From Thalia democratica (lineage: Eukaryota), in the NCBI GenBank assembly GCA_965202585.1, contig OZ241826.1:80104001-80168000 (forward strand): a stretch of DNA of 64,000 nt, read 5' to 3'. The notes below the pieces were generated by a model that was not told where the DNA came from, made no database searches, and was given only the letters and a program-made list of their open reading frames with translations. This document shows, piece after piece, positions 11,346 through 64,000 of the stretch (positions within the stretch are counted from its first letter, which is position 1; every line of letters starts with the position of its first letter). Made by a program: the position numbers and the translations under genes.

Positions 11346-12999
11346 ACGGCACTTAAAAAGGGGCTGGTTTTGAATCTCGCTGGTCTAATTGAATCTCGCT
11401 GGTGTTCTGCAGTGTTGTGTGAGATGAACTTTTTTCGTTGAGATTTTGAATAGGCTGCAAACCCTTTAAAAATATTTTGCGGTGTCGCTTATAAAAATGA
11501 GTTTATTTTTTACTGGTTAGAAAGTTATTTTTTTAGTAATTTTCATTAGTTTTGCCTGTTCGTTTGCTGTTAACTAAAACTATTGAGTTTTTATTTAACG
11601 TTTAATCAATTTACTACCACTATTTGTTTGCTAGTTAACATTGCTTAGTTTAAGTTATAGACCATTAATGACAACGTTTTATGTGGTTTTTTGCTCAAAG
11701 TTTCACAGCAAAACTTTTTTTAAACTAGCGTTAATTAAATAAAATCAAAGATGTTAGATAGCTAAGGGTGCACAACTAAGCAGATTCGGATAATCCAAAT
11801 TACCAAAAAAAAAAAAAGAAAAGGCTACAACTAAAAAATATATGTATATTTGTCAAACAACAAAAAATTAAATGCAGTTTCTATTAATATCTACAAGCTA
11901 TTTTTTTTTGCATTTTTCAAAACATTAAATAATTTTTGAGATACGGCTTAAAAAAACTAAAAACATAGTTATTTTTGATATTTATTAAACATCTTTAAAA
12001 ATATTTAAGATTTATTAAAAACAAAAAAGTGGCTTGAAGATATTAATTAGATCTACATATGTATTTAAATTTTTGAGGTATAGTCTTTTAAATCTCTTTT
12101 TAAGAATTTAAATTGTCGGGATTCGAGTTATTAGAATTTGAGTTGTCATGTAACCGTTTTTTGTTATCAAAGTAATGTTTTTTAAACTTATCATAAAACA
12201 TTTTTGCAAGATAAAGTTTAGATAATTGTACTTAAAGTGTTATTTTTTTACAAAAATTTTGAGAAATGCAGTTGAAAAACTAACTAACAAATGCTTTTAT
12301 GTTGTAGATAATACAGCTAGTACTTACAAATCAAGTACAACGGTTATTGATAGTTTAATGTATGGTTATTGATAAAACTATTTTACTATTAAACATTTTT
12401 TTTACAATCTATAAAAAACTTTTCCAAATCAAGTTAACTATTTTATTTTTCTTTAAATACTTTTAAAAATTAATTAGAAAAATTAAGTCTCGTTTTTCTT
12501 TTAGTTGCAAAACCTGTAATAAAACATACTAAATAGTTTTTACTATTTGTCTTAAATTTTTCTTCAAACAATCGTTTTAATAAACAGTTAAGTTGACCTA
12601 GTTATCTACAAAAAAATAAACTTGAACTTCTTAACAACAAACAAGTATTTAAAAACAGAAAGCTAGAAAAAAAGTGATTAGATCAAAAACTTTTCAAACA
12701 AATAAACTGCTCATTAACCGCCAACCTCGGCATAAACTCGATTTTCAAAACTTCGACAAGCTTCCAAAGCTGCCGTCTCGCTTTGCTTCTGCTACAAAAT
12801 AAAAAGCTTCTGCTCGTCGATGGCCGTCGAATGCACTTCTTTCCGCCGCTCGCCTCTCTCCGCTGCGTCGCTCAGCAAACTTTTAATCGCCGCCGCTGTT
12901 GCTCGAAAGTGAAAAGAGAGAGAGACGACGAAGCATCAGATCACACACGACCCTCAAACGATGCCGCCACCCCCACTTTCGTGCCCGTGCGACCGAAAA

Positions 13000-14580
13000 G
13001 CTGCTGCCAAGCTACGAGGGGTCGTAATTGTGGGGGGGACGCAGGAAGCAATAACCTTGCTGTGCGCTTAGTGAGGGGAAATTTGTTGTTATCGCCGCTT
13101 CTTTATTGGTTTTTCATTGTGCTTTTGGCCGACTTCGCTATGTTTCTGCGGTAGTTTTTTCTCGGTAAGTGGCTGTTTTTTTTTGGGAAAGTGAACAAGT
13201 CTGCGACAGTTTAGTTTTGTGTTTAGTTTTCAAATGTTAAAAATTTTAAGATGGTTGTTTAGTTTAAAAGTGTTTGCATAAGATTATTGTTTTTTTTTTC
13301 AACGTTTTGTTTCTTTCATAAAAGCGACTTGTTCAAATTATTAATAGTTAAGAAAAAGTCACCAAAAAACAACATAAACTATTCAAACTAAAAAGCAGTG
13401 TGGCAAGACTTTTCCCTACTTTCGCTGTTCAGCCATCAGCTTGTGACGTCATAACGAGCAATGCATGGCCCGAGTTGTTCGTGCAATCGCGCGCTCGCGG
13501 AAAATATCATAAATAAAACTGAAGCCTCACCGGGATTCCGCGTTCAAATTTTAAAAATTATTTCTCTAAGGAGAGATAAACCGCTAACCTCCAGTACGTT
13601 CAGTTACGTGCTGGTATGTAACCTATAATTAGCGATTAAAAGCTCTCATGCTGTATATCTTTTCACAAAGTTCGATGATAATTAAACCGCGAGGTCGTTT
13701 GGTTTTGCGCCATAGTCGACAAACTGAAGTTAAATTCGCGTGTAAAAGTAGTTCTAAGCTCACAGGAAGCAATGACCTCGCTAAGCGCTGTTAGAAGGGA
13801 GAAACTTTATCGTCGCTTTTTATTGACTTTCTTTGTGCTTTCGGCCGACGTCGCTAGTTTTTGACGAGTGCTTTTTCTTGGTAAGTGGCTGTTTTTTTCG
13901 GAAAGCGAAGAAGTGTTTACACAGTGTTTTGTTTTAAAGTCTTAAAAACTTTTAATCAGGTTGCGAAATAGACATGTAAGTATTTTTTTAGTCTTTTGTA
14001 AGTTTTGATACAAGCGAGTTAGTTCAAACTGTAGGTTATTGAAAAATATATTAAAACTAACATTTGTAAACGAAAAAAGAAGCAGCATTGCAAAGTTTCA
14101 TTTCTTTCAATCCTTAAATAATACGGAGCAGACACCTCGAAAGAAAAAACGATTTACAGAGCAAACAAAAATAAACATAGTGGAAAGTTTTTTTGAAAGT
14201 TTTTGCAAAAGCAGTATGTTACAAATTTCGCAATCTCATCGTTCAACCATCTGCTTTTATTACGTCACAACCAAAGCTCTAACTTTTTTCGGTGGAAAAC
14301 AACAACCGATCGCTTGCTCGTGGAAAAACTTCATAAATTAAACAAAAACCTCAATTGGATTTCGCGTTTGATAATACTTCCCCTGTAATATTTCCCTAAA
14401 GAGAGATAAACCGCTAACCTGCAGTACTTTCAGTTACATGCTGATATGTAACCTGTTAGTAGCGCTTCAAAGCTCGTTGAATATCATTTCGCAAATCTCG
14501 GTGGTAATTAAACCGCGAGGTCGTTCAGTTACGCATTCAGTTGATAAATCGAACTGAAATTCGCGTGTAATAGAGAGAAA
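13000..14580. repeat. Tandem duplication of a ~750-bp unit upstream of A (mirrored at about 49920-51190)
   Basis: 13050-13190 recurs at 13770-13910 (both end GGTAAGTGGCTG); 13470-13740 recurs at 14280-14570 (GAGAGATAAACCGCTAACCT...AATTAAACCGCGAGGTCGTT). Confidence 0.8.
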
Positions 14581-16060: not shown

Positions 16061-17727
16061 TTTGTTTTTTATTTTATAATTGTATAAAAATTATTTTTAT
16101 GATAAATGTTTTTAATAGCTTTAAACTTAGTTTTACAGTTTTTTTTTCATTTTTAGCATTAGATGGCAGTGATTATCAAGCTTATAAAAAAAAAACTTAT
16201 TACTAAAATAAATTGTATGCTTTAAACTAGCATACATTTTTTATTGTTCATTATAGCTTCTGTTATCATCGTGAAATATTATTTTATAATAGTTGAGCAG
16301 TCCAGATTTAACAAAACTATTTTTTGATTAATATAAATTATATGTCTAAGACTAAAGTATTCTTAAAAGCTTAATCTTGAGAAAATTTGTTCATTTTAAA
16401 ATCTACAGGTACAAACGAACTATAGAAACGTCTTTAACTAAGACTTAACTCATACTAATAAAATCTTAAAAAAGTTTTTATTATGCAAGCAGTTTGTTTA
16501 CATTATTTTTAAAGATATTATTAATTATCTCAAGTTGTAATTGATGAAATTTATTTACTTCAATTTTAAAAATATAGAGAAATTTTTAATTTAATTAGCA
16601 TTCTAAAATACCGTACACGATTAATACTATTTTCACTTTTAGTTAGTGTTGTACACTGATCCAAAAAAAAGACCAGTTTAAATTGGTTCCGTAACGACAG
16701 TTTCTACATTAGGAAATGCTAGAAAATAAAACATAAAAACCTAATACTTCGTATTTTACTCACCACTTTTCAAATTCATTAGTAATCTTCAGTTAAACTT
16801 CCTTACATTTGAAACTTAAATTACTACGAGTAGTGTCCTTTTATTTATTTGTTTTCCTGTGAGTTTTAACAAATAAACTGCACAAAATTAAAATTCTGTA
16901 ATGCATGTTTTGTAAACTATAAATTTTGCAAACGAGAAAAAATAGCAAAACTGCTTATATTTAATTTTTTTTAAACAAACTTTGACGTAATAAAGCATCA
17001 ATTAATGAAAAACAAAAATAGATATTTGTTTTTACCAAATTAATTGAAAAAACATAAACTTTGAAGTTTTTATTTTACACAAGTTAAGATACACTTCAAC
17101 GCATTTTTATATACTGGACAAGCTAGACATACTTTTACAATTTATAGTATATTATCTTAAACATTTATAGCTTTTATATTAATTTACGTCTTAATCACTA
17201 GTAACGCGATATTTCAAGTAAGGTTTTGTTACCGAAAAGTTTATGTTTGGTTTATTATAGTTTTCATAGTTTCTCAAAGTTCATAATGTAGTTATAATGT
17301 CCTTTTTATTTCTACAAATTTATATTTCTTCTCTGTAATCTAAATTATCAAAATATTAACGAAAGTTTAAATATCAATAGTTTTTGATTAATTTAAATAA
17401 ATATAATTAGAATCGTGAAGAACCTTTACACCCTACAAGTGTAAGAAAATATTGTTACTATCTTGTTGCTGTAAATATAAAATAAGAAAAACTAGTTGTT
17501 GTCTACCAATAATTCTGCTGCAAATTAAGTATAATTAAAATCAAGCTTTGCTGAATAGTAATTGATTTTATTTGAAAATGAAAACAAAAATATATTTCAA
17601 TTAAAACTAAAAAAAAAAAGTAGAACTTCTGATTGTTCAAAGTAAATTTTAACAATAAAACTATTACGTGTCAACAGCCGACGAATAAACAGAAATCAAG
17701 AAAAAGTATATTTCTAAAGCATGTCGG

Positions 17728-18487
17728 TTACATTTCTTCAAGAACAACATAAAATCTATCTCCATCGTCCAAATACTCACAGACTTCAATATGGTCGTAC
17801 ATCTCATATAGCATATTCGTACCAGTCTGAAGCTTAATTTGCCGGACACTGCAGTTAAGTTCTTCAGAAAGAAGTTCCTTCAGCTTGCCCACAGTGTAGT
17901 GCTTGTAACACTCGATCGGAGTGTCCCCAAAACCGTCGTCAGATACCAAGTTGTAGTACAACAGAAATAGAATCATCTGGTTAGAAGTGTGATTGTTAGT
18001 TTAGTCTAATAAAAATTATAAAGTTATGCTAAGTACAGCTACCAGCTAACAAAATTAGTATATGTTTTTTAGCTAACAGTTTTAAACTTTCAACTGTTAG
18101 TTGATTTTTTAAAGTAATTGTATTTAATTAAGTAACATATGAACAAAATCTTTTTTATACATTATTAAAGTTACAGTACAATAACATTTTTCAAAATGAA
18201 AAATTTTTTTTATTCTTAATTAGCTACTAGACTAATTAGTTTTAAACTACTTCCTTTATTTTTTAAGTTTCTTAGAACAATTATAATCGGTTATTAAATT
18301 AAGCTTAACTATTTTTTACCCAAAATTGCTTTGTGCTCAGTTTGCTTTTGACCTTGTTTAAAACAATTGAGCTCACTCCAGAGTGGTTACATCTCTCGAA
18401 TATTCGACTTTCTCGCGGTCCTTTTTTTTCTGGGTCAGTCGCTGGGTGTTTAAAGGTAATTCCCCTTATGCTCGGGGAGTTCCCCAT
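17728..18487 (-). CDS. Small two-exon protein (119 aa) with N-myristoylation motif and ubiquitin-like domain
   Basis: Exon 1 18487-18377 (MGNSPS...NHSG, phase-0 donor GGA|gtgagc); exon 2 17976-17728 (acceptor aaccag|ATG, ends TAA). Exon 2 MILFLLYY...DTPIECYKHYTVGKLKELLSEELNCSVRQIKLQTGTNMLYEMYDHIEVCEYLDDGDRFYVVL follows the ubiquitin pattern (TI..LK..I.......Q.L....L.D...L..Y.I.....L.LVL). Both exons are GC-richer than their flanks. Confidence 0.75.
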
Positions 18488-19531
18488 CACCGAGCTTGTG
18501 ACGTTCCCTGGCTGTCACTTTTAGTTTTACAATCAAAAGTACTAATGTTAAAAGCAAAGTCAAACAAGTGTTGAAAGAATTAAACTATTTAAATATTAAA
18601 CAGAAAACAAATACTAAGTTGCTCATTGTTTTTTAATTAACGAAGGACTTTTTTGTTTATTTATTTTGCTATGATTGTATAACATACTACATTTAGGAAA
18701 AACTTGAAAAAAAGTGTTAACATTTCACTGAGTGAAAAACCCTATTTTCTTAATGAAATTGGACGCTTAAGATCTAAAAAATCTGATTTTTTTTAAACGC
18801 CCTAACAAATAAAGTATGAAAGTTACACTAGGTGATTTAAGATTCAAACTATTTTTGGGTGATGTGTAGTTTATTAGTTCTTTAACCAATTTTGTTGCAA
18901 TCTGTTGTTATTTTTTGATTAAACTGTTTTATATTTTATGATAAGCTTATATAGAAAAGTAATTTTTCAAACTGGAAAATTTTAGTTGTACGTGTTAAGC
19001 GTTAAAGAAATTATGCACACTTAAAATAAATTTAAATTTTATTATTCTTTTTTTTACTTTTATACTTAAATTGTGTTACTTGGAGTTAAACTTTTATTTT
19101 TAATCAAAAATTGTTATAAAAGGGTTTTTTATAAATATCTACTAAATCTATCTACATAAATCTACTAAAAGTTTATCTATTATATGTTTCAGTTTTTATA
19201 AAACAAATAAGAGATCTCAACTACTGGAGGAGAAATAATGAATTTATTCTTTCAATAATTTATTTTTCAAACTAAGCTTCGGTCAAAGACTTCGTCAGTG
19301 CTTAAATAAATCTAAAAACATATGTGACAGTCATGGAAAATAGCATTTAAACAATTAAAATAAGATAAAAACAAATTTTTACTCAAAGTTTTTACTTAAA
19401 AAACTAAAAAACTAAATTTTAATATTAAGATTGAGTTTAAGGTAAAGTTTAAACTTTAGTTACGTTTTAAAATCATAATAACAACAATAAAAAATAATAA
19501 AAGCTGTATGTAGGTTTCTTTTTTTCTTCTA

Positions 19532-19780
19532 GTTAATTTTTGATAATGATATTGAAAAATTTCGATGAAATGAGCAAATGGAGTTGTAAAAGAGTTGGTC
19601 AGTATTTGGAAAAATTGATTTGGGGCAATATAAACAAGTAAATAAAAAATTTTAAGTTGACATTTTTGAACATAAAAAAAAAATTTAAGTTAACACTCAT
19701 TTAAAAATATATTTTCTTATTTCCTCCGCTCATCGTAACTTGGGGTCGTACCTCTTCATTCTCAAAGCTCACTATTTCCC
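19532..19780 (+). pseudogene. Relic of SAM-encoding exons 13 and 14 of a lost SAMD11-like copy
   Basis: 19532-19637 reads ILKNFDEMSKWSCKRVGQYLEK, then a 1-nt deletion, then LGQYKQ|gt, matching exon 13 of B/C. 19716-19780 (ATTTCCTCCGCTCATCGTAACTTGGGGTCGTACCTCTTCATTCTC) matches the 3' half of B exon 14; its 5' half is missing. Confidence 0.85.
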
Positions 19781-20369
19781 TTCCTTTAAGGATACTTTAC
19801 ATAGTAAAAACTTCTTGTACGTATTTTAAGAACTTCCGCCTGTCATAAAAATGTTTTGTAATGTAAATTGTGTTATTATTAAATTTATTTTCTTTAATAG
19901 TGTCGCAACGTTTATTGTGAACTTTAAGTGGATTTAATTTTAGAAGTGCAAAAAAGACGCTTCATGTTTTAAACAAAAACTAAATTTTAAACTAGATCTT
20001 TTGTTAAAGTTTCAGCTTTAAAATTTATCAGCATGCTGACCAGAAAAAGTATAAAACAAAGACATTAAAATGTTGATTTCAACTAACTATGCAGTTTTTT
20101 ACTTTATTTACTAAAACAGTACAAAAAAAATATAAAATTTTTAAGAACATGTTTTCATGTTTCATAAAATAATTAAATCAAATTTAAGCACAAAAGATTT
20201 CATTTAAATTTTATCAAAATTACTAATTTCAGCTAGTAGTTGTAAACAAACAGTTCTAAAATTAACTTTTCCTCATTTTAAACATTTACCAAACATTTTC
20301 AAACAATTTATTTTTAGTCCTGAATTATTTCAGCACTTTAATAAAACATTAATCTTCTTTATACTACGG

Positions 20370-49500: not shown

Positions 49501-52500
49501 AACGTGAACTTTGAAATAGCATCATAACTTTTAATGTTAAATTACTTTTAAAACTGTGATTGTTTTTATTTTACTAAAACTCTGAACTTTTCTTATTATT
49601 GCAAGTAGTTCTTTTTTGAAAACTTATTCGTTTGCAAAAGTTCAGTCTGTTGTTGAAGGAATCAATATCGAGAACTTATAAATGAAGTAAAGCCAAAAGA
49701 AAAGCATTTCAACAATACCAAGCCGTTTCAAAGACATTTCAGGTAAAATAATAGTACGAACAAAATATGTTGGCACCGAAGCTCGCTTTAAACCAGAAAG
49801 CTAACCAGTAAGCGACGACTTTTAAAACCTTTATTAACCAGAACGACCGTGAGGGAATCTTAATTCGATTTTCCCAAAGGCCTTCTTACACCGCTACTCA
49901 TTTTATTATATTCTACTTTTACACGCGAATTTCTGTTCAGGTTAGCGGTTTATCCTTCTCCCATGGGAAATATTTTACAAATTTGAACGCAAAATCCCAT
50001 TGAAGCTTCAGTTTGATTTATTATGTTTTTCCACGAGCGCCCGACCGGTGCTTTTTTCCACCGAAAAAACATTAGAGCTCGGGTCACGCATTGTGACGTC
50101 ATAAAAGCAGATGGTTGAACTGTGAGATTGCGAAATTTGTAACACACTGTTTGAGCAAAAATTGCAAAAAAAAATCTATCCATTCTGTTTTTTTTCGCTC
50201 TGTATTCTGATTTTTTTTCAAGGTATCATTGTTTAACAATAAAAAGCTGTGAATCTTTAAAATGCTGTTTTTTTTTTGTTCGTTCACAGTTTATGCCTTT
50301 TTTTGACGATTTTTGTTCAACTATCTATAATTTTAACAAACTGGCTTTTACGAAAAAGTTTACAAAAACTAAAAAAAAAAAACTTGAATGAATTTTTTTG
50401 CAAACTTATAATAAAAAACCAACTCAAAATTTTTAGGAAACTAAAAACTGCCTAAAAACTTATTCGCTTTCCCGTAAAAAAATCACTTACCAAGAAAAAT
50501 GCACTCGCAGAAAACTAGCGACGTCGGCCGAAAGCACTAAGAAAAGGTCAAGGCGGCGATAAAAGCTAAAATTCTCCCCACACCATGCACACAGCGAGGT
50601 TATTGCTTTGCGTGTACCCAAAATCGCGACCCTTTGAAGCTCAGCAGCCGGTTTTCGGTCGCTCGAAATGCGAACGCAAAAACCCAGTGATGGTTTTGTT
50701 TGATATATGATGTTTTTCCACGAGCGCGCGATCGGTTTTTTTCCACCGAAAAAAATTAGAGCTCGGGTTATGCAAGGCAAGTTATGACGTCACAAAAGCA
50801 GATGGCTGAACGGTGAGAGCTTTGCAAAATTTACCACTCTGCTTTTTTGTTTATTTGCATTGTATTCCGTTTTTTTTTTTAAGTAAAACGTTTTTAACAT
50901 TTTTCAATTTTAAAATTTTAAAATTAAAAAATATGCACATTAAACATTCAACTTAAAAGTTTTAAGATTTAAAAACTAAACACTTTACTGCAGACTTTTT
51001 CACTTTCCCGAAAAATAGCCACTTACTAATAAAAAGCACGAAAACGCGATGTCGACCAAAAGCACAAAGTTATAAGCCAACAAAACGCGGCGATAAAATT
51101 TCATTCTTCCCCGCAATTAAGCGCACAGCGAGGTTATTGCTTCCTGTGCCTCCCTAAACACACGACTTTTTTGTTGCTCAGCAGCAGCTTTTCGGTCGCA
51201 CGGGCGCGAAAGTGGGGGTGGCGGCTTTGTTTGAGGATCGTGTGTGATCTGATGCTTCGTCGCCTTTCTCTCTCTTTTCACTTTCGAGCAACGGCGGCGG
51301 CGATTAAAAGTTTGCTGAGCGACGCAGCGGAGAGAGCCGAGCGGCGGAAAGAAGTGCATTCGACGGCATTCGACGAGCAGAAGCTTTTTATTTTGTAGCA
51401 GAAGCAAAGCGAGACGGCGGCTTTGGAAGCTTGTCGAAGTTTTGAATATCGAGATTCTATTTTCGTAGGTGGTTAATGAGCAGTTTGCAGGTTTCTTTTA
51501 AAAGTTTTTGTTTAACACTTTTATTCAGTTTTGTTTTTTTACATTTTTTGTTGTTTTAAAGTTTCAGTTTAGGTTTTTAAGTAAATAGAATTGTTTTACT
51601 GTTAATTAAACGATGGTATGACTAAAAGTTCAATAAATAGTTAAAGTTTTTTAATAAGTTTTATTTCATGTTTTGTAGCTATGTTGAATAACGAGACTTT
51701 AAACTTTATTTTTTTTTTATCGGTAATTAATCGAAATTTAAATAACTTACTGGATTTGGAAAAATTTTTAAGTATTTTAACGAAATGCTTTTTATAGTAA
51801 AATATTGAAGATTGAAAATCATAAAAAAAAATTAATGATAATTTATGTACTAGACTTATAAATACTAGAGTTTTTATCTACAGTATAAACGTATTGAATT
51901 CTTATTGTTTCTTAATTCTTATTACAAGCAAATAACAATACAATTTTAAACAAATAAATTTTATAATGCAAACAGTTTGTATGGTAGTGTTTTTAGACTT
52001 TTCTTAATAATAATAAAGTTAATTAACATTATTGTATATATATTTTTGTTTCATCTATGCTAGTTGTAAACATATTTACTTCTAAGAATAGTCTTACTCT
52101 AAAAGTCTGAACTAAAGAAATTGTACTATGTTGTCATTTGTGCGCTATGACTTGAGTACAGCAATGTTCACTGGTAGAAAAATAATGATTGTAAATTACT
52201 TAAGCATCGATTAAAAACGTAATAGTTTTACATACTAGCGAATAAGTAGACGAAATAAACAATAGTAAGAAAAAATTTGCCTTTTTAAGCGACGCCGTAA
52301 AAACTTTTAAATGATTGTTGAACTTCGGGCTCTCAAATCTTCAACGAAAGCTCATCTTACACAACAGCCACCAGCAAGATTTCATTAGAGACCCTTTAAA
52401 ACCGGCCCCCCTTAAAGCGTGGTCGCACACGGCGCGTTATCTCAGCAGCTAGCTGCCTTTTCCTGCTTCAAGAATGACAAGGCAGCTTGCGAGTGAACGA

Positions 52501-52989
52501 AACGAAGGAATAATCTCAGCAAGAAAAGAAGCAGCGAAACTAGGTGAGGGCAAGTTGTATGTGAATGATTGGCATCGACTTTGTTTTGAACTCTTCTCTT
52601 TATGGCTTCCAAGTGAAGCCAGCTTCTCACATGCCGCTAATTAAAGGCGCCGAATTAGCAGGCGTTTAGCTGGCAGCTCTTGTTTTGCGTTTGGAATTTG
52701 ATGGTGGCTACTTTCATAAAGTTATAATCTCTGATGGGCGTACTTTTGAATGGTAGCAGAAGCTATACGGATTTCGTTTGTATTTTATTTTTACTGGAGC
52801 TTTAAATAAATTCAAAAGGGTTATAAGTAAAATGTTGTTTTGCTTATATTTTAATTACTTTCGTTCCAAGTAATATATAATTTAACAGTACTTTTGTATA
52901 GAATAAGTACTTTTTTAAGGCAAAAAATAATTTTTTGCAGCACAAAAATCCTCATAGGCTCGTGGCAAGCTTTTCATTCACTTTCCATA

Positions 52990-53650
52990 CATTAGTTCTT
53001 CCATAAGAAATCTTTAAAACGACAACCAGTGTGTCGGCTGGCGAAAAAAAAGTAGGAAGGGAAACACAAAAAAACGAGACAGACAAGTGGTATGCCTAAA
53101 ACTGTCGCCTTCTCTTAAGTTTCCGAATTTAGAAAATCAATCTACCGCCGCCCTCGCTAATTTCACCTCTTTATCTGCTAAAATCTATACATTCAACTTC
53201 AAAGCTGTTTCACAGACAGCTACCACACACAACGCGCTGCTATTTTTTACTCTCGCTAATTGTCAGCTCGTTAGATGCCGTCGCTGGTTTTTTCTACTTA
53301 AAAGTACAATAAGCTATTAAAAAGCAGAGGGGCGGTGATTTTCGCTCGGTGTGTTTTCAGTTGCGTGTTTTTATCGCAAACACACAAACAATGAAAAGAG
53401 CTGCGGTTTTTCGCACAACGCAGCGCTCGGATTTAGTTGTTTACACAGCGCGCTTCTGCTAACACGATTTCGCCTCGTTTTCATTTTTCGCTGAGGTCCG
53501 TAACCGCATCACCGCAACTGGTTGCTGACAACAGAGCTGATCGCAATCTGTCTTGCTCGGTGCCTACTCCCGGGTCGTCGTCTCGGTCGAAATCGTTTGC
53601 CGTGGGAACCAGATGCCGAGAGGAGCGCGATGGCCTCAAGTCTAATGAAT
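52990..53650 (+). promoter_or_regulatory. CpG-rich promoter / non-coding first exon region of copy C
   Basis: Reverse complement of 10140-10750; candidate donor GAG|GTCCGT at 53496. Confidence 0.5.
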
Positions 53651-53805
53651 CAGAATTTTTCATTGAACTTTTTTTCTTTTGCATTTTTTTGAAAAGAGAT
53701 TGAATGCGACGTTTTAAAATTTGTTTTGAAAGTGTCAGAGATACGTTAAGCTTTTAGTTGTTTTAATATTATATTAACTTTTTAACAAGGAAACGTAAAA
53801 GCATC

Positions 53806-53897
53806 TATCATAAAACATTTTCATAGTTATCCCTTTTGTATGTAATAAGTTTATCATAAAACATTTTCATAGTTATCCCTTTTGTATGTAATAAGTT
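53806..53897. repeat. Perfect 2 x 46-bp tandem duplication in the 5' intron of copy C
   Basis: TATCATAAAACATTTTCATAGTTATCCCTTTTGTATGTAATAAGTT repeated exactly. Confidence 0.95.
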
Positions 53898-54363
53898 TTC
53901 AATTAATTGATATGCAAAACATTAGTATTTACAATTCTAAATGTAAGAACAAGCTGGTTTAGGTAATATCTTAATTAAAGAAAAATTTTCGAACAAAAGT
54001 TTAAGATTTAAAAAAGATTTTTACAGATTTTTACCAACTATAGTTAATTATTTATCAATTTTACTTTTTGTTATAAATTAATTATTTGTTTCCTAGTAAA
54101 ATTATGAGTAACAAATATCTCCATTTAATTCATGGTAAAATAACAATTATTAAATAATTACCAATTAGTACTTGTTTATATTATTCAATTTTCTTAAAAC
54201 TGAAAGTCATTAAAAATACTGTTCAATGAAAACTACAGATTAAACAGACTGCTTTATTTCTTTCAAACTATTAAAACTATGTTTTACTTAACAAAGAATG
54301 TTTTGTAAATTTAAAAAATATTAGTAATCACGTGAATTACAGGTAAATAAAAATACTCTAAAT

Positions 54364-57300
54364 ATGGGTTCTTCAGCAGTTCCGGGTATTTCTGCCGATT
54401 TATCGACAATTTTAAGCCAATCAGGTGCCGAGTTCGGCGATATTTTTTCTCAACCCGACCTTGCCAGTATGTGGATGTTTAACAACCCGGCAGCCATGTT
54501 GCCTGGTAACCCGTTTCCTGGGGGATTTCCGCAAATTCCCTCTAAGCAGCAAAAAGATGGTGAATTTTTTGGGTTCGACCAGCTTCAATTTGGAGGCCCA
54601 AACCAACTTGACTGGTAAGTAATTTGGCAGAAATTTAATTACTAGATACTTAAGTAAAGTAGAAAGTTTTTTTTTTATCGACTGTTGAAAATGTATTTTG
54701 AAAAATATGCTGTTTAAAATACTATTAAACTTCAAGGAACTGTATTTTTTTCAATTGATAAAGAAGTGTTAATTTTAGAATAAATTTGGTTGTCTAGCTC
54801 TTTTGTCTGGTAATTCTTCAAATGTATTTATACTCTAACGCTACAGGTTAAAATACAAAAAAAAAAGTTAATTATTACCATAAAATTTATCTCACGTATT
54901 TTTACTTGGCTCAAAGAGCTTTAAAAGTTCTACGAACAAAGTTAAAATTAATAATTTAATCTGGTTCAAGTGTTATCGAAAAGTATTTATAAATTACCTG
55001 TAAATATCGATATTTTTTTTTTAAGCGATAATAAAACTAACAACTTCAAAGAAGTACTAGCTAAATCCAATTGTTTCGTTTTAAAGTAGTTCTTGCTTAA
55101 AACTCTAAAAAACTAAGCTTAAATAAAACAATCATCTTTTTTAGAACTTTTTTTGGAACCTTAAAGTTATTAATTTCAAAGTAACACTAACTGATAAAGT
55201 TGTGTCTTTCTAAATAACACTGCTAAAGACTATAAAAAACTAATTCTCGAAAACATTTACATCAAAAAGATTTTTCTTGAGAAAAAACTTGAAGCTTTAG
55301 ACATATGGTTTACTTTATTGCGTATGGAGGAAGCTTAAAACCGCCTTAGCAGACGTCGGTGATTTTTGTCGATGCTGGTTAATTAAAAGTACGACGCTGA
55401 AAGTTGGACGACCCGGTTGCCAAGCAACCATACCACCTCGGTTGCCATCCGAGAGACCACAAGTGTTTATCGGCTTCAATGCAGCTCGAAACTTGGCAAC
55501 CGTTGCTAAGGAGCTTGTTTACATGGTGACGTGGTCGTCGGATGTGTTTTTACTGGCGCGTGTGTGGCTGGTTGCTATGGAAACTGCTGACTTGTTGAGT
55601 TGTAACAACATAAAAATAACTACTGTTTAACACGCTGTTTGCGAAAAAATTTCTTTCGTTTGATTTATATATTCAACTTTATATTAAAACTTTTCTTTTG
55701 TTCTAGTTTTTTTTTAATAACTTAATATACTAATTTTCACAAACGCTGTTTAAATTTTTAATTGCTTAATAGTCAACTTTTTCAGGTTACAAGTTTTAAA
55801 CCTGATGAACCTGAACAAGAAACAAGAAAGTATGATGCCGTTTCCTAATATGCCAATGTTCGACAACACAACGCTTTCACGGTAAAATAATAAATTACTA
55901 AAATAAAGCGTGTTTCTATCAGCTTGTAAGATAAAAAACTAACCTTCTCAACGGTAAAGTTTTGAATTAATAAAACTATTACTAAGTCGTTTTTTATTAG
56001 ATTTTTTTAAGACAAAAAACTATAACTTTTACTCACAGTAAAATTAGTTATCATTTTTTCACAGCAACAACCAGTTCAATCATCATCAGCTTGTTTCAAC
56101 GCAACAGAGATCAACTTCCGCTATGACGTCATCACCAGAACTGTCATCCACGACTTCCGTTGTCGAATGTCAGCAGCCCCCGGTTGTTACTAGTAGCAAC
56201 GGAAAAAGAGTCGTTACTCCTAACGGCAACTGTTAGTTTTCGTTGAACCGTGTGGTGTTGTGTACATACGACAAAAAAGTCAATACGAAACTAAAATTTT
56301 CATTTATATTTAGTACAATTTTTTCTATATATATGTATCATTTATATTTTTAAACATTTTTTAATTCGTTTTTGATTTTCTATTAAAATCTTTATGATAT
56401 ACATAGCCCTTAACCTCGCATATGTGGAACAAATTTTGCAGCTGATAAATTGGTTTAATTTCTTTAGAAATTAATTGAAGCTAGCAATGGTTTCAATACT
56501 CTCCAATACAGCTTTAATTTTTTTGTGACATTTACGGATGGAGAAAATGTTACAGGTTTTTAATATAAACTTTAAAGTTTATGTATTTAAGCGCTTAAAT
56601 TTATAAACGAAGTTTACACATATTAACTTACACTCGTCAAAGCTTTTCGGGCTCGCAAGTTTTTAACAGGCGCAATTGATTTTCAACAAAATCAAATTTG
56701 AATGATCAACCGTACAACCTCGCGCGTACTTAATTGCTATTCTACTCAAATTTGATTGCTAAAAAAAGCTGTTTTCAGTAACTTCGGTGCTAAGTTCTGA
56801 CACTGCGGATTGGCGTTGACCTACCCCTTTGTTCCAATCAATCTTCGGCTGTAAAATCCGAAACTGCGCAACGCTGATGTATAGAGAAGGTGATTAATTA
56901 TTTCGTTATACATCGAGAAGGCTTCTTATTGTATTGTTGTTGGCGGTTTTCAAACAAAATACTGCTTGCGTTATTTGCACACAGGTCAATGCAGACGACT
57001 GCCAACATGTTGATAAATTTTTGTGTATTTAAAGATTAGGATGCGCATTTTTTTATATCATATTTTATTATTTTTTTGGTTTGAACTTTGATATAATACA
57101 TGTAAGACTTGATCAATTTTATTAATTTTTTCAGTACGTTTTTGCATGTCTAACAAGTCTAATATGTTTGATGCTTTGAAATACTTCAATGGCTGGCAAG
57201 AAATAAAAAGCCTGACAAAGAAAAATGACTGACAAGAAAAGCTGCGGCCTACATGAAAAAAATCTTTTTTTTCTTTGCTGAATTTTTAGAAATATTTTAC

Positions 57301-60300
57301 TATAAGCTTCTCGCTTTTAATTAAGCTGCACCTCGCTAAGATTTTTAAAACACTGAAAGGTCGACTTGTCTCGCGATGTGTGTCTTTGAAAAGCGTTAAA
57401 TCACGGAACACGCCTCTGAAATAAGCTAAAAGCTTTGAGTGGCGCAGCGAGCTAAGTTGGCTTCTTATCTGCCGTTCAATCATTCAGCGAGTTTCGGCGG
57501 CAACTATTCTCGCATTGTTCGCCTCACACGACACGATAGAGATAGAAATTCAAACGGCCGCAGCGAAAAAAAGCAAATAAAATTTGGTGCGGCAATAAAT
57601 AATGAATAAAAGCTTCTTGCCTCAATCAATTATTCGCAATGTAGGTTTTCAAACACATCACCGAGGACAGTTGAATTTTAGTTTTTATTGGCTTTCCGAG
57701 ATAAAGAAACAAAAAGTGAAAAGGCAAAAAACTTGCAGGTTGCGTTATAAAATAAAGCTTGAACGAAAAGGAAGCTCGTCAATCGATAAATTAGACACGG
57801 AAGACAGCTAATGGTGACCTTACGCAACGATTCTATCTACGAAGGTTGTCATTGGCAAAACACAACGATGCAAAAAAAAAAACCGATGAGCTGCAATGAC
57901 GTGACAAAGGATTAAGAGCATAAAGAAGCAGCGACGGAAGCAGATGATTTCGAGTAGAAGGAAGCAAATAAGCGTGACTAGTTTTCAATATTTGTTTTTC
58001 ACCTTGCTGCTTGTACAAACAAAAATATTTGCGGTGTCAACATGCGAGCGGCCAGCAAACATCGACGGCGATTTAAAAAAAAATAAGAGGAGAACGCTGC
58101 TTGACGCTTTGTGCTAACTAAAAAGCTTTCAGCTGCCGCTCGCACGCCAAACAACGCTAGCTGTGACGTCATAAAGATCTCTGTGTCAAAAGTTCTCGCT
58201 CTCGTCACACCAGGCTTTCCAACTTTCTTAGTTACAAAGCCCCGCTCTACAGCTAAGTATTGACGACGAAATACTTTTCACTTTTTTTTTTCTTTTTCTC
58301 AGAAAGCAAATAAAAACTAAAATTCAACTGTCCTCGGTGAGTGTTTGAAAACCTTCATTGCGAATAATTACTTTTAGCTATTTACTCAAAATTTAGTAAT
58401 TTGAAGGTTATAATTTTCTAATATCACTAATAAGTTTGGTAATAGAACTGTAAATTAATAGGCTATGAAACATATCAAAGCGGATATTTAAGTAACGAAA
58501 ACCATAAGCTTATTTTACAAATATGAAACTAAAAGTTAAAATTTTAAGATAAAATATTTACAGATTTGATGAAAAGCTCAGTGACCAAAGTTAGAACACA
58601 AAACCGGTTGTCAGAGGCAACAAGCCATCACCACGTAGCAACGGAGGGTTGCAGGTGGACGGTGAACCTGCCGAAAGGACACGTGAGCAGTTCGGAGGTG
58701 GAAGTGAAGAAGGACGAAAGTGGAGAGGAGTTTTTGGAGGTGACTTGCGGCGACAACAATGCCCTCCTCTACATCGCAAGACTCAGCCAGGGTAGCAAAG
58801 GTATTAACATACTTTTTTTTAATTCAAATACTTTTATTCGAAAATAAAGAAGCATAAAATTAATTTATTGTCATAGTTAATAAGTAAACTATAGTTAAAA
58901 AAAATCTTAAAGACCCTTTCAATCGTCAGTATACATTTTTTATTTCCTATATTTACTTTAAATTGGATTGTTCTTACTTGGTATATGTTTAAATAAGTTA
59001 TAGGTTTATATTTATGTAATTATTATAAAATATCAGTAAAATTTGTAAGTACCTCTATATTAAAACAAAACTAGATTGGATTATAAACGTTGCTGTCTAA
59101 TGTTTTATAAAAATGCAGTGTTAAAAGTGTTTAAATGTTGATGTAGATAATATTTTTTCTAACATTTTTCAAAAGTTCATGGCTACAAAAACAGTAAATT
59201 AAATGTTTGTGTTCTACCAATTTTCAGTTATATCAAAAATTACAACTTGTATCAAAATTGTTTTGTTTTTTATTATTACATATTGTTATTACAGTATTTA
59301 AAAATGTGATTAAAAAGAAAATATATTTTTAAAAACTGTTTAGTGTATCCAAACTTACATTAAACAAACCTTTAATAAAAAAATTAAAGCTCCTGTAAGT
59401 GTATCTAAAATAAAAAGCTTTGTTTTACAACAAGAACTGTCAAAACTAAAAATTATTTTGAGCAAAGTCATTAAGAATGTTATACATGTATGTAAAATAT
59501 ACAACCTTTTTAAAATATTGTTTAAAAATGTTTTTTAAATAGATTTAATTTAGAACAACTCAAAATAGATATTAAAAAAAAAATTGTTTCAAGCTAGTAA
59601 AATAAAAAAAGTTAACATCAGAATTATATCTATAATATTTTTACAAAAGTAAAAGAAATTATAAAAGTAAAGGATAACTCGCTAAAAAAATGTGACAATA
59701 AATTAAGACTTAAACGACAATACGAGAGAATTTTCAAACGAACGGCGTCAACAGCTCACAGTTAAATGGCTGCAAATCAAAACAAAAGCAATTGCTCACA
59801 AAAGTATTTCGTTGCAATTTGATTACTTTCTCGCAACGCAGACTGTTCCTTATATCGCCTAGATTTTTTTGTTTATTTGACCAGAACGTGAAATTCCATT
59901 CAATCGGGCCGCTTGTGATTTTTTCTAACATTTCTCTTCATTTCTAAGACGGCTTTTGCGCTAAATGTCGTCTCTATCCGTAAATTACATTAGCTTTTTG
60001 CGTGCAACTAGTAGAACAAAGTTTAACGTTATTACTGTGCTCTTTCTTTTCTATTTTTGTACGTTAGACTTTAAAGCTTTAAGAAAAAAAATTTTATCTA
60101 AAAGTTTTAAATAGTTTAATACAAATTAAAAAAAGAAAACAGGTACCTCAAGAAAGTTTTCAACGTTTAATTTTACGGATCTTAACTTTACAGGCAAATC
60201 GATTCTGTATGAGCTTGGGGGCAAGCAGAGCTGGATGCATCCCAACGAGTTCCAAGCGATAAGCGGGAGGGAGACTGCTAAAGATTGGAAGAGGAGCATC

Positions 60301-63300
60301 AGACATCACGGGAAGAGTCTGAAAGCTCTCATGTCAAAATCGGTGATCATTCATCATCAGAACGAATGCGAATGTGAATGGTGTCTGAAGAACATTGCTT
60401 TCCTCGCTCAAAATCACGTGGTGAGATTTTGTTTTTGTCTGTTATCTCGTTGAAAATTTTTTAATTAAACTGAAGCTTTAGCGGTAAAGTACTTTATCCT
60501 AGGGAAAATTAACATTTGCTGATACAAACGATAATCATTATGTATGTGTGGTTAAAAAAATTGTTGAACTTTTATTTTAGTTTTTATTTTACAGATAGAC
60601 TAAAAGCAAAGATAAAAAAATTATATATAGATAACATAAATTAAAAAAATAAAGTTATTTGTTTTTAGTATATTTAGCAAAAATTAATTTAGAAAAGATA
60701 TTTTATATGGTACATGAAAAAGGCTGATTTTAATTAGTTACAAAGCAAATATTTTAATCCTAGGTATTTTGGTTTTTTAACTTCGTTAAAGAATATAGAT
60801 GTTACTTTTTTTTTTTTTAATTTCTTTAAGTTAACAAAATATCAAACAGACAAGTTTATCTGAAGATATCGTGCCAAATAAAATAAGCCATATTTTCCCT
60901 TCCACCATCAAAAACCAGCGGGAAGATCATGATAACGTCACTGCATGGCAACCGTTAGTTTCGTTGCCAAGCAACCTACCTAACTCTCCTATGATGGGTT
61001 TCGACAGCTCGCCGTTGCTGGCCAAAATCGGCGAATCAGCGACGAGAAGTTCCGCATTCACTTGCGTTCTGCCGTCTAGAAAAATGTTTGTTGTTTATTT
61101 TTTTTCGAACTGAGCAACCTTTTTATTACATTTTTTAGTATGATTTAAACACTAAATGTGGTTTTACAATGTATATCTTAAAGCACATTTCACAAAAGTT
61201 TTGTATTTTATAAATTTGTTGCTAATATTTGAAAATTGTTTAGAGCTTCCCCACCACAAATTCAACATAAATATCCATCTTCGACTGAGAAAAAAGTTCA
61301 AAATCATTCTTCAAACGAAGAGACATCTTCCCGAAAAAGGTCTCACAACGTTGAAGAAAACCAGGTTTGGAATTGTTTCAATTGGAAAAATTTTTTTTTG
61401 AAATATTTATCTATCAAATTTAAACAGTTTAATATTTAAGAATCGTTTGAATGAAGAAGCAAACGAAACACGTCCTACTGTTAACAAGAAATCAAAATTT
61501 GAAGATGGTTTGTTTTTTAAAATGCATATTTTAAAGTATTTGAACTCATAGAAATAGTAATATGAATTTTAAAATCTGCAGATAATTTAGTACTACTGTT
61601 TTTTCTGTAATTTTGTTTTACAAACAATACAAAATTAATTCTAGATATTAAAATACAGATTTTTTAGACTTTCTGCCGAACTTACACGAAAATTCAATTA
61701 ACTTCGACTACAACAAGTAGGTTTTTATTATATTAAAAAGAAAATTGCTAACAGCTGTCCTTAAAAATAAAAGCAAATAATCGTTCAAAGTAAATGTTTC
61801 CGTTAACATACGAGTAAAAATAATTTATCTTTTTATTCAGAAAATTTTAGATTTATTTTTAAAACAAATTTTTTTTTCAAGTTCTCAGCCTACAAAAGTA
61901 CATGTTACAAAAAATATATAACTCTATATTTTTAACAAAGTTTTAATTCAAGCCAGCTTATTTTGCGCTGCTAAAAATTGACATTTAAACTAATTTTTGC
62001 AAATAAATGTTTGTACACTTCTAACATTTTATTTTGTTTTATATTCTAAAATTATTATAGACAGATAAATTATTTATTATACTGTATAACTGTTTAGTCT
62101 ATATACTATTATTTATTTAACTTGGCTTAAAAATCTTTAATTTACATTGAGATGGTTTAAAACAATGTTGTTATTATTTATAGATTTTTTAGATAAAGTT
62201 TTTGTACAAAATATAGTGGTAATGAATTATTTTATAAATATTAAGTTGCTAAAAGTTTTACAGGAAAACAATTTTTTTACTTGACGAAAGTTTAAACTTA
62301 AAGTATTTGTAACTTACTAGATTAGAACTATTTTATTTTGTAGAATAAAAAAGCTTTATGAAGCTAAAAACAGTTGTTTGCATAGCAGATTTATCATGAC
62401 TTTTATTATTTATTATCTTGTTTACGTGTATAAAAAAAGTTTTATATTAAAGTTAAAAAACTAGTAGTAATTATAAGTCATTTTTTTTAACAAATCTTTA
62501 TTGAATTTTAAATTATATTTTTTAAGTTAATAATTTTGTTTTATTTATTAATTTATTTCTAGACTAATGCTGGATAAGACGAATCTTGTAAAGAACATGG
62601 CAGCTGCATTCGGTCAATTGGCGCCAAATTTACTTGAAAATATTAAAATAAATTGCAAGTCTGAAGCAGAAGAAGATGTGAGCCAATCAGAAGAATGGCA
62701 TTCAAAAAATGTCAATCTGAAAAACAACTCAAAAGAAGCTAATGTTGAAGTTGTAAACAAGTAAGTAGTTTTATGTATATTTAAACTTTATGTTGCACTT
62801 AAGTTAACCCTTTTAAAGCAAGTAAGTCTTAGAATCTACAAAACATATTTTATCTTCAAACATATTTTATCCGATAAGCGTTTTTACTTCATAATGTTAA
62901 AAACATCCATATACCAAAAATTCAACTAACAAACCTTGAAACTTAACTTAAAAGCTAAGTAAATAAACAATAAACTTATGTTTCAAAATTAACTTCATAG
63001 CTGTCAAAGCACATTACGTAATTATTGTAGAACTAATTTTTTACTTTAATTCTAGCAAAAGAAACGAAAAAAATGAAACAGCTGTTATAAAGTCAATGCA
63101 GAAGAACGTAAAAAGATCAAAAAGTGTTCCTATGTAAGTTTGTAATATTTTTTGTAAAATTTATTTATGGATATAGTTTAATTTTTAAATAGATATAATT
63201 CAATCAAATAAAAATGCATACTTTGTATCACATAACTTTTGTTTTCTTTTTCAAAGCTTTGTAAAGCTGATAGTTGTAAAAAAATATTCCTACTGCAGTA

Positions 63301-64000
63301 AAACTTAACCTTTTGTGAAACAAAAATAAAATGTTAGATTTTCATTTTCAGAGAACTTAAAGAACATACCAAAAGGCTAAGAACTTCTAGTTCACTTTTT
63401 AACTCGTAAGTTTATAAGAACTTTATACATCTAACATAAATTTGTTGTTTAAATCTGTAATAACCTTGTTTTGCTTTACAGAAATTCCACTTCAGAAGGC
63501 GTTTCTCTTAACAACTTTAATCTTCTGAACAACAAAACAACGCTTAAAACTGAACCCCTACATCAAACCCAAACAAAAAACGCTTTATTGTTGGGTAAAA
63601 CTAACAACAGAACGTCTTTTATGTCTCCTGATGAACTTACAATTGAAACGATATTGAAAAACTCTGATGACATGATCAAATGGAGTTGTGAAAGAGTCGG
63701 TCAGTATTTAGATGAAATCAATTTGGGACAGTATAAACAAGTGAGTTGAAATTATAAAACTCAAAACGCATCATTTTCTTTAGGAATTTCTTAAGACTAT
63801 GTATAATTAAATTCGAACGTAGTCATAAATAGTTTTACTTAATACTAAAACTTTGAAAATAAAAGGACTTCAGTCTTGTTTAAATTAAAATTTTTAAGTT
63901 GTTGTTTGTTCTACAACACGAAATAGAAATATAGTTATGCAATAGTAACCATGACAACAGATCTTCCTTGACAACGGAATCAATGGACATTCCCTCCCGT
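54364..64000 (+). CDS. SAMD11: SAMD11-like copy C (inverted paralogue of A; final exon truncated by window end)
   Basis: Exons 54364-54614, 55786-55881, 56065-56231, 58564-58800, 60194-60420, 60850-61085, 61244-61364, 61441-61507, 61668-61716, 62563-62760, 63056(or 63082)-63132, 63352-63405, 63482-63740, 63961->64000. SAND in exons 4-5; SAM starts WSCERVGQYLDEINLGQYKQ|IFLDNGINGHSLP. Sizes of exons 2-6, 8 and 9 equal those of copy A. Exon 11 keeps frame only with the 63082 acceptor. Confidence 0.82.
55415..55585. promoter_or_regulatory. Paralogous RFX X-box cluster in intron 1 of copy C
   Basis: GTTGCCAAGCAAC 55416-55428, GTTTACATGGTGAC 55517-55530, GTTGCTATGGAAAC 55571-55584. Confidence 0.55.

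Follow-up and report, generated by a model that had tools for sequence, protein, structure and literature searches.

The window analyzed here, i.e., a 64,000-nucleotide stretch of the Thalia democratica genome, likely harbors a genuine lineage-restricted gene, the conserved product of which would be a protein of 78–82 residues with a ubiquitin-like (UBL) beta-grasp fold and the leader of which would be untranslated. Judging from the collections searched, this UBL family appears to be confined to a small number of related genomes and metagenomes from marine plankton. The preliminary description of the locus had proposed a spliced orphan UBL of 119 residues; its second part, the 82-residue UBL gene, proved to be conserved, whereas the frame of its first exon is not conserved as a coding sequence.

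Layout of the UBL Locus

The features of the locus are as follows (window coordinates):

17976–17731, with the stop TAA at 17730–17728, minus strand: conserved CDS of 82 codons, from MILF.. to ..VVLEEM
18376–17977, minus strand: intron of the earlier model, 400 nt (or, in the case of trans-splicing or of a transcription start within it, outron/leader)
18006–18007, minus strand: alternative 3' splice site ttattAG/ac, 29 nt 5' of the ATG, behind a T-rich tract
18377–18487, minus strand: 37-codon frame MGNSPS...CNHSG, copy-specific, within a GC-rich conserved leader/promoter block
17446–18987, minus strand: 1.5-kb block aligning end to end with the contigs of relatives (blastn of L014, L019 and L020)

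The 1.5-kb block comprises the upstream region, the leader, the intron, the CDS and ~280 nt of the 3' flank; by its alignable extent, it likely represents the transcription unit plus the promoter. The leader ATG lies at 18487–18485, and the 37-codon frame closes with CNHSG at 18377. There, the donor reads GGA/GTGAGC, and the acceptor, aaccag/ATG, abuts the second ATG at 17976. The junction 18377/17976 is of phase 0 and both frames are in phase, so the 119-residue reading is possible; in this respect, the two frame pieces, the GT..AG pair and the junction are present in the sequence as originally described, and the automatic ORF track indeed splits the two pieces. The GC content amounts to 40% in the CDS, 48% in the leader block, 23% in the intron and ~24% in the surroundings. 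When the local 3 kb were shuffled 500 times, 29 of the shuffled sequences contained an ORF of at least 82 codons. The length of the ORF by itself could thus be due to chance, and it is conservation and the pattern of substitutions that make the case for a gene.

A Second Copy, Distant Relatives and Selection on the Coding Frame

A six-frame search of the 802-Mb assembly revealed an inverted twin of the CDS at C1:79989928–79990173, on the opposite strand, 131 kb away and 99% identical. Hence, the earlier statement that the gene has no mirror partner holds within the window but fails outside it. The CDS of the twin differs from that of the window at 7 of 246 nt, six of the changes being synonymous and one an Asn/Ser replacement; given 48 synonymous and 198 non-synonymous sites, the binomial probability of at least six synonymous changes out of seven is P = 3.3e-4. 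The non-coding parts of the two copies, aligned over 3.2 kb, are 84–93% (about 87%) identical.

Searches of protein collections (5.8 + 1.84 billion sequences) returned three clusters of relatives only: P0001 with 89% identity, P0002, a cluster of seven natural variants with ~76% identity, and P0003 with 58% identity, the latter added by an exhaustive search of the 1.84 billion representatives. All three originate from ENA metagenome assemblies, several of them from TARA Oceans samples. A second profile search of the 5.8 billion proteins yielded nothing beyond the same three clusters, and scans of JGI metagenomes and of IMG/VR viral sequences gave zero further relatives. Two more candidates were rejected: P0004 (1455 aa, low-complexity repeats) is a spurious repeat protein, and the putative paralogue at C4:47750511–47750669 (E 0.6) is AT-rich and riddled with stops.

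Each of the nine distinct CDS variants from the genome of the window and the ENA/TARA metagenomes retains the ATG and the open frame. The length differences between these coding sequences are all multiples of three (internal deletions of 3 and 12 nt, overall differences of 6 and 12 nt). The pairwise dN/dS between lineages is 0.04–0.39 (0.18–0.39 against the relatives), and the comparison of the window with the 76% group gives pS 0.47 vs. pN 0.12 in the ORF. This constraint is unevenly distributed: pN/pS is ~1 for residues 43–57 (window 17806–17850) and 0.18–0.39 for the remainder of the protein. The fold core (residues 1–42 and 58–82) is under purifying selection, and residues 43–57 change at an about neutral rate. 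The latter, placed by the AlphaFold2 (AF2) model in strands 3–4, may constitute either a fast-evolving contact surface or a loose, unconstrained loop.

The same set of variants bears on the question of whether the 82-codon frame is a complete gene or one exon of a larger protein, e.g., an alternative exon of the neighboring SAND-SAM genes (see below) or an exon of an unrecognized upstream gene. Such an arrangement is suggested by the position of the frame between two SAND-SAM genes and on the same strand, in a conserved neighborhood, as well as by a GTGAGT inside the frame, at the EVCEY codons. Nevertheless, it is quite improbable: both the ATG and the stop are kept in 9/9 variants, an in-frame TAA stands 9 codons before the ATG in most lineages, the only in-phase acceptor is missing in L007, the residues beyond the internal GTGAGT are among the best conserved, and the predicted fold is complete from Met1 to the stop.

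The N-Terminal Frame and the Leader

In the twin, a 1-nt deletion reduces the N-terminal piece to MGNS-stop, and 2-nt and 1-nt deletions follow within the same 111 nt, so the leader of this copy displays three frame-breaking deletions in 111 nt vs. none in the 246 nt of the CDS; stops are present in all three phases before the donor. In four relatives of the 76% group (L003, L014, L019 and L020), the ATG is replaced by AAG, 21 nt are deleted, and stops again occur in 3/3 phases. The leader block remains alignable, and the donor GTGAGCT is kept in the window copy, the twin and these four relatives.

As for the acceptor, the most distant relative (L007/L008) carries aaaaac before the conserved ATG and, consequently, has no acceptor AG directly at the ATG. 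The only AG near the ATG common to all 11 loci is that at 18007–18006, situated 29–31 nt upstream. If this AG at -29 is used, the exon-1 frame ends at a TGA overlapping the main ATG, and an in-frame stop TAA stands ahead of the main ATG. The closed exon-1 frame of the twin and the relatives, together with the lack of an AG at the ATG in L007/L008, implies that the conserved protein starts at 17976. The MGNSPS frame (18487–18377) is therefore probably non-coding as far as its sequence comparison goes, being an untranslated leader or a part of the promoter. The block would be either a non-coding first exon joined through the conserved donor or a stretch of outron that is cut off when a spliced leader is trans-spliced to the conserved AG at -29. 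By chance, the window copy alone would then possess an ATG whose open frame is in phase with the acceptor abutting the main ATG; the chance openness of a 36-codon stretch at 48% GC is about one in five, according to a rough estimate.

The MGNSPS start does fit the MGxxx[S/T] pattern in the letters of the window, as had been noticed before. Across the orthologues, a MGxxx[S/T/A] start is not conserved and is found in the window copy only. Since the MG start of the twin is closed and the relatives have none, lipid anchoring is not a feature of the family, and the N-myristoylated extension of 37 residues originally proposed has to be given up at the family level: it is open in the window copy only.

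For this particular copy, the original model could still be true. According to it, the mRNA starts 5' of 18487, is spliced at 18377/17976 and is translated from the first AUG (gtgATGg, with G at -3 and +4) into a 119-residue, N-myristoylated, membrane-tethered UBL, the extension being a young, species- or copy-specific acquisition from the 5' leader. In the window copy, the frame stays open and continues in phase across the junction, the donor and the acceptor are canonical, and the leader block is GC-rich and exon-like. Moreover, the window copy retains the state of the relatives at two of the three indels; the deletions of the twin are thus derived at these positions, and an open frame may have been present in the ancestor shared by both copies. 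On balance, this reading is unlikely, considering the closed frame in the twin and the four relatives, the latter lacking even the ATG, the appreciable odds of chance openness, and the better conservation of the -29 acceptor, which would terminate the frame. The three sequencing runs containing the locus consist of genomic contigs with an even depth over the intron and the exons and contain no 18377/17976 joint. The preferred reading of the leader as untranslated is retained below.

Conservation of the Non-Coding Upstream Sequence

The sequence upstream of the CDS is conserved to a comparable degree. The intron is 0.79–0.81 identical to that of the relatives vs. 0.80–0.81 for the CDS, with very few indels, and the whole leader/intron/promoter region (window 17977–18987) retains an identity of 0.75–0.81 to the 76% group. 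The 269 nt before the ATG are 0.71 identical to the 58% relative. In the 3' flank, the identity decays from 0.76 to 0.52. Synonymous sites of the ORF (pS 0.47) diverge more than the intron (difference ~0.20). Since the upstream region is conserved like the CDS and the synonymous sites diverge more than the intron, the leader and the intron are probably under a regulatory or RNA-level constraint, as far as can be judged from the alignments.

The conservation of the non-coding upstream kilobase on a par with the CDS also means that something other than the protein could account for some of the conservation of the ORF at the nucleotide level. In the extreme case, the locus would not be a functioning protein gene at all but a conserved non-coding element of the SAND-SAM cluster (regulatory DNA or an RNA gene) with a surviving old ORF, or else a recently silenced gene. 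Consistent with this, conservation is about even over the whole 1.5-kb block, 1 kb of which is non-coding, the search of RNA runs gave no RNA run containing the stretch, and the exact window protein is missing from a collection of 15 billion proteins. However, the substitutions in the ORF are biased toward synonymous ones, both against the 76% group and against the twin (6:1), with the intron differing by ~0.20 only, and this synonymous excess argues for protein-level selection on the ORF. In addition, all ORF indels preserve the frame, whereas the adjacent leader collects 1- and 2-nt indels. The absence of a functioning protein gene is accordingly very improbable, and the interpretation of the locus as a protein-coding gene is followed here.

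Several other peculiarities of the upstream region were recorded. Repeated TAGCTAA/GTTAGCT motifs occur in window 17977–18987, and a long-range pairing of 18 bp is predicted between 18234–18214 and 18054–18036, its covariation support being negligible. In a comparison with Rfam, the locus came nowhere near any gathering score. The twin (L005) carries a 237-nt insertion opposite 18595/18596, ~110 nt upstream of the leader ATG, and the insertion point is exactly a TATTTAAATA-like element of the window copy; on this ground, the two copies may differ in promoter use.

Predicted Fold of the UBL Protein

The ubiquitin-like beta-grasp fold predicted for the second piece is supported, with moderate confidence, by two structure models and four fold searches, in line with the pattern noticed initially. 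The ESM Atlas model of the exact window sequence (pTM 0.68) matched clusters of UBL5, Hub1, ubiquitin and ubiquilin with TM 0.79–0.83 over residues 1–82; the UBLs of BAG proteins were also near, and the first structural row was Hub1/UBL5. The AF2 models built on 5- and 11-sequence alignments reached a pLDDT of ~70. The arrangement of their strands and helix agrees with the beta-grasp topology, beta-beta-alpha-beta-beta-(3-10)-beta over about 75 residues, except for a poorly modelled first hairpin (pLDDT <50 at residues 1–4 and 9–17).

Foldseek, the check suggested at the outset for such a model, placed Hub1/UBL5 at the top both in the PDB and among the Swiss-Prot models (E 0.02–0.06; 0.02–0.1 over the Hub1/UBL5 matches), with essentially all matches listed being UBLs. 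In VIA-align, many UBLs scored Z 6.3–6.9, and TBCE, parkin, ubiquitin, ISG15 and Hub1 were on a par; when it was run against 48,161 chains with no Foldseek prefilter, 50 of the 50 matches listed were beta-grasp/UBL structures (Z up to 6.7). None of these scores is more than middling, the Foldseek E-values being no better than 0.02 and all Z <8. The subfamily was not singled out by the fold searches: Hub1/UBL5, TBCE/TBCB and the HERPUD UBLs were the nearest, none of them significantly.

At the level of sequence, the echoes are weak. Zero Pfam families, the Ubiquitin-clan profiles PF00240, PF11976 and PF14560 included, matched the window protein at E up to 10, and the sole Pfam match among the 11 family members was UN_NPL4, itself a UBL (E 0.003, 3/11). 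Sequence searches of the PDB gave the UBL of HERPUD2 (E 0.19) and Hub1 (phmmer E 0.44–0.62), both below the threshold, and the profile search of the PDB produced no significant match (best E 0.23). Thus, the family is as unrecognized as was initially stated, neither Pfam nor any other known family claiming the protein.

Based on the models, the whole protein appears to be one complete beta-grasp domain, in which strand 1 would begin at Met1 (MILF.., cf. MQIF.. in ubiquitin); the last strand reaches within 0–3 acidic/hydrophobic residues of the stop. A zinc/redox site formed by C42, H62 and C66 was considered and dropped, C42 being replaced by Phe in two natural variants.

The C-Terminus and the Likely Mode of Action

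The C-termini of the 11 sequences read VVLEEM, VVLEEI, VVLE/VVFE or IFIEDF. No Gly follows G72 in any of them, which excludes a Gly-Gly tail, and no CAAX box is present, the last Cys being C66, 16 residues before the end. The initial observation that the protein ends in VVLEEM with neither a diglycine nor a CAAX motif thus extends to the family. Since it lacks a flexible tail and a Gly-Gly, as well as a Cys close to its end, the protein is expected to undergo neither E1 activation nor prenylation. Most likely, by analogy, it is a non-conjugatable, non-covalent binding module: the UBL would bind partner proteins non-covalently, like Hub1/UBL5 and the UBL domains integral to larger proteins.

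Genomic Context and Duplication History

The UBL gene resides in a cluster of SAND-SAM genes, of which the following elements were delineated in the window (the genes by exon mapping):

9907 to 2276, continuing beyond the left edge, minus strand: SAND-SAM gene
39829 to 30363, minus strand: SAND-SAM gene
54364 to the right edge, plus strand: SAND-SAM gene
12783–13154 and 51088–51374: GC-rich blocks, upstream of the first and the third SAND-SAM gene, respectively

The UBL gene is encoded on the minus strand, and its distance to the left GC-rich block, which lies downstream of it, is 4.5 kb. One SAND-SAM gene lies 12 kb upstream of it, and the next begins its coding exons 7.8 kb downstream. Window 1–38180 is mirrored in inverted orientation at C1:79960082–80005449, over >40 kb and with 70–92% identity. 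This inverted duplicate keeps the order of the elements (two SAND-SAM genes, a SAM relic and the UBL twin), and the UBL gene occupies the same relative place in it, 114–131 kb upstream. A TARA contig of a relative (L014) displays the order UBL, ~5-kb spacer, GC-rich block and SAND-SAM upstream region. Since the same synteny is found in the inverted duplicate and in L014, the UBL gene is an old syntenic neighbor of the cluster and not an insertion. The right arm within the window (about 50000–64000) contains one SAND-SAM gene and a GC-rich block with 69–78% identity, without a UBL gene; it is an older, shorter duplicate. The initial conclusion that the gene had been inserted, or its twin deleted, hence does not stand: only this older duplicate is devoid of the gene.

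A few side observations pertain to this region. The inverted segmental duplicate lies 98–208 kb from its partner. A relic of two SAM exons, 65% identical to the intact copies, is located at 19549–19626 and 19716–19784 on the plus strand, in a head-to-head orientation relative to the UBL gene, and SAND exons are lacking in its vicinity; the relic is also kept beside the twin (C1:79987868–79988146). In three genomic runs, window 19153–19596 behaves as a very high-copy repeat, its summed contig depth reaching several thousand times that of the single-copy neighbors, with many strand-switch joints. It probably represents a family of short mobile elements, inserted here in the interval that separates the promoter region of the UBL gene from the SAM relic.

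The neighborhood shared by both arms of the inverted duplication and by the TARA relative has also been the basis for a more elaborate proposal. According to it, the UBL serves the SAND-SAM chromatin regulators as a dedicated non-covalent partner and co-evolves rapidly with them, with residues 43–57 as the contact surface, and the leader of the window copy (copy A) has recently been turned, by de novo gain, into an N-myristoylated, membrane-tethered isoform. As a whole, this combination is regarded as very unlikely; the plain reading of a lineage-restricted UBL gene with an untranslated leader is preferred.

Comparison with Known UBL Proteins

Hub1/UBL5 is a stand-alone, pan-eukaryotic UBL of ~73 residues that acts non-covalently, e.g., on the HIND elements of Snu66, and Hub1 ends in a di-tyrosine. 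The window UBL resembles it in consisting of a single domain of comparable length, in which the initiator Met belongs to the first strand and a C-terminal Gly-Gly is missing, as well as in a weak alignment over the helix, strands 3–4 and the DHI..Y segment. At the same time, the match of the sequences is below significance (the phmmer values given above), Hub1 is not favored over other UBLs by VIA-align (Z 6.4 vs. 6.9), the tail is acidic/hydrophobic instead of the di-tyrosine, and the occurrence of the window UBL in a narrow marine lineage contrasts with the pan-eukaryotic distribution of Hub1/UBL5.

The UBLs of TBCE/TBCB head the VIA-align matches (4icu, Z 6.7–6.9 over 69–70 residues with 20% identity; 4b6w, Z 6.5), and that of HERPUD2 is the best UBL match by sequence, sharing TVGKLK at the start of the helix and 26% identity in the structural alignment. 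Still, these matches are middling on the scale of the tool, with E >0.1, and the UBLs of TBCE/TBCB and HERPUD1/2 are domains of large multidomain proteins, whereas the window UBL is the entire protein.

Among membrane-associated UBLs, MUB/UBL3 are anchored via a C-terminal CAAX, which the window UBL lacks. UBTD1/2 are UBLs starting with MG; the window copy would share such a start (MGxxxS) only if exon 1 were translated, and it is devoid of the extra domain of the UBTD type. The lack of a Gly-Gly tail sets the protein apart from Ub, NEDD8, SUMO, ISG15 and Fubi.

Implications

In terms of annotation, the locus is best represented as a single 82-codon coding exon with a non-coding or trans-spliced leader, and a second copy of the UBL gene is to be added at the position of the inverted twin. 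The case also exemplifies that a MGxxxS start in a hand-spliced first exon needs to be checked against paralogues and relatives: the leader gathers frameshifts, whereas the 246 nt that follow display almost only synonymous changes. To our knowledge, the stand-alone non-conjugatable UBLs have few characterized members (Hub1/UBL5). The putative protein encoded here would add a taxonomically restricted, hitherto unannotated family to this group.
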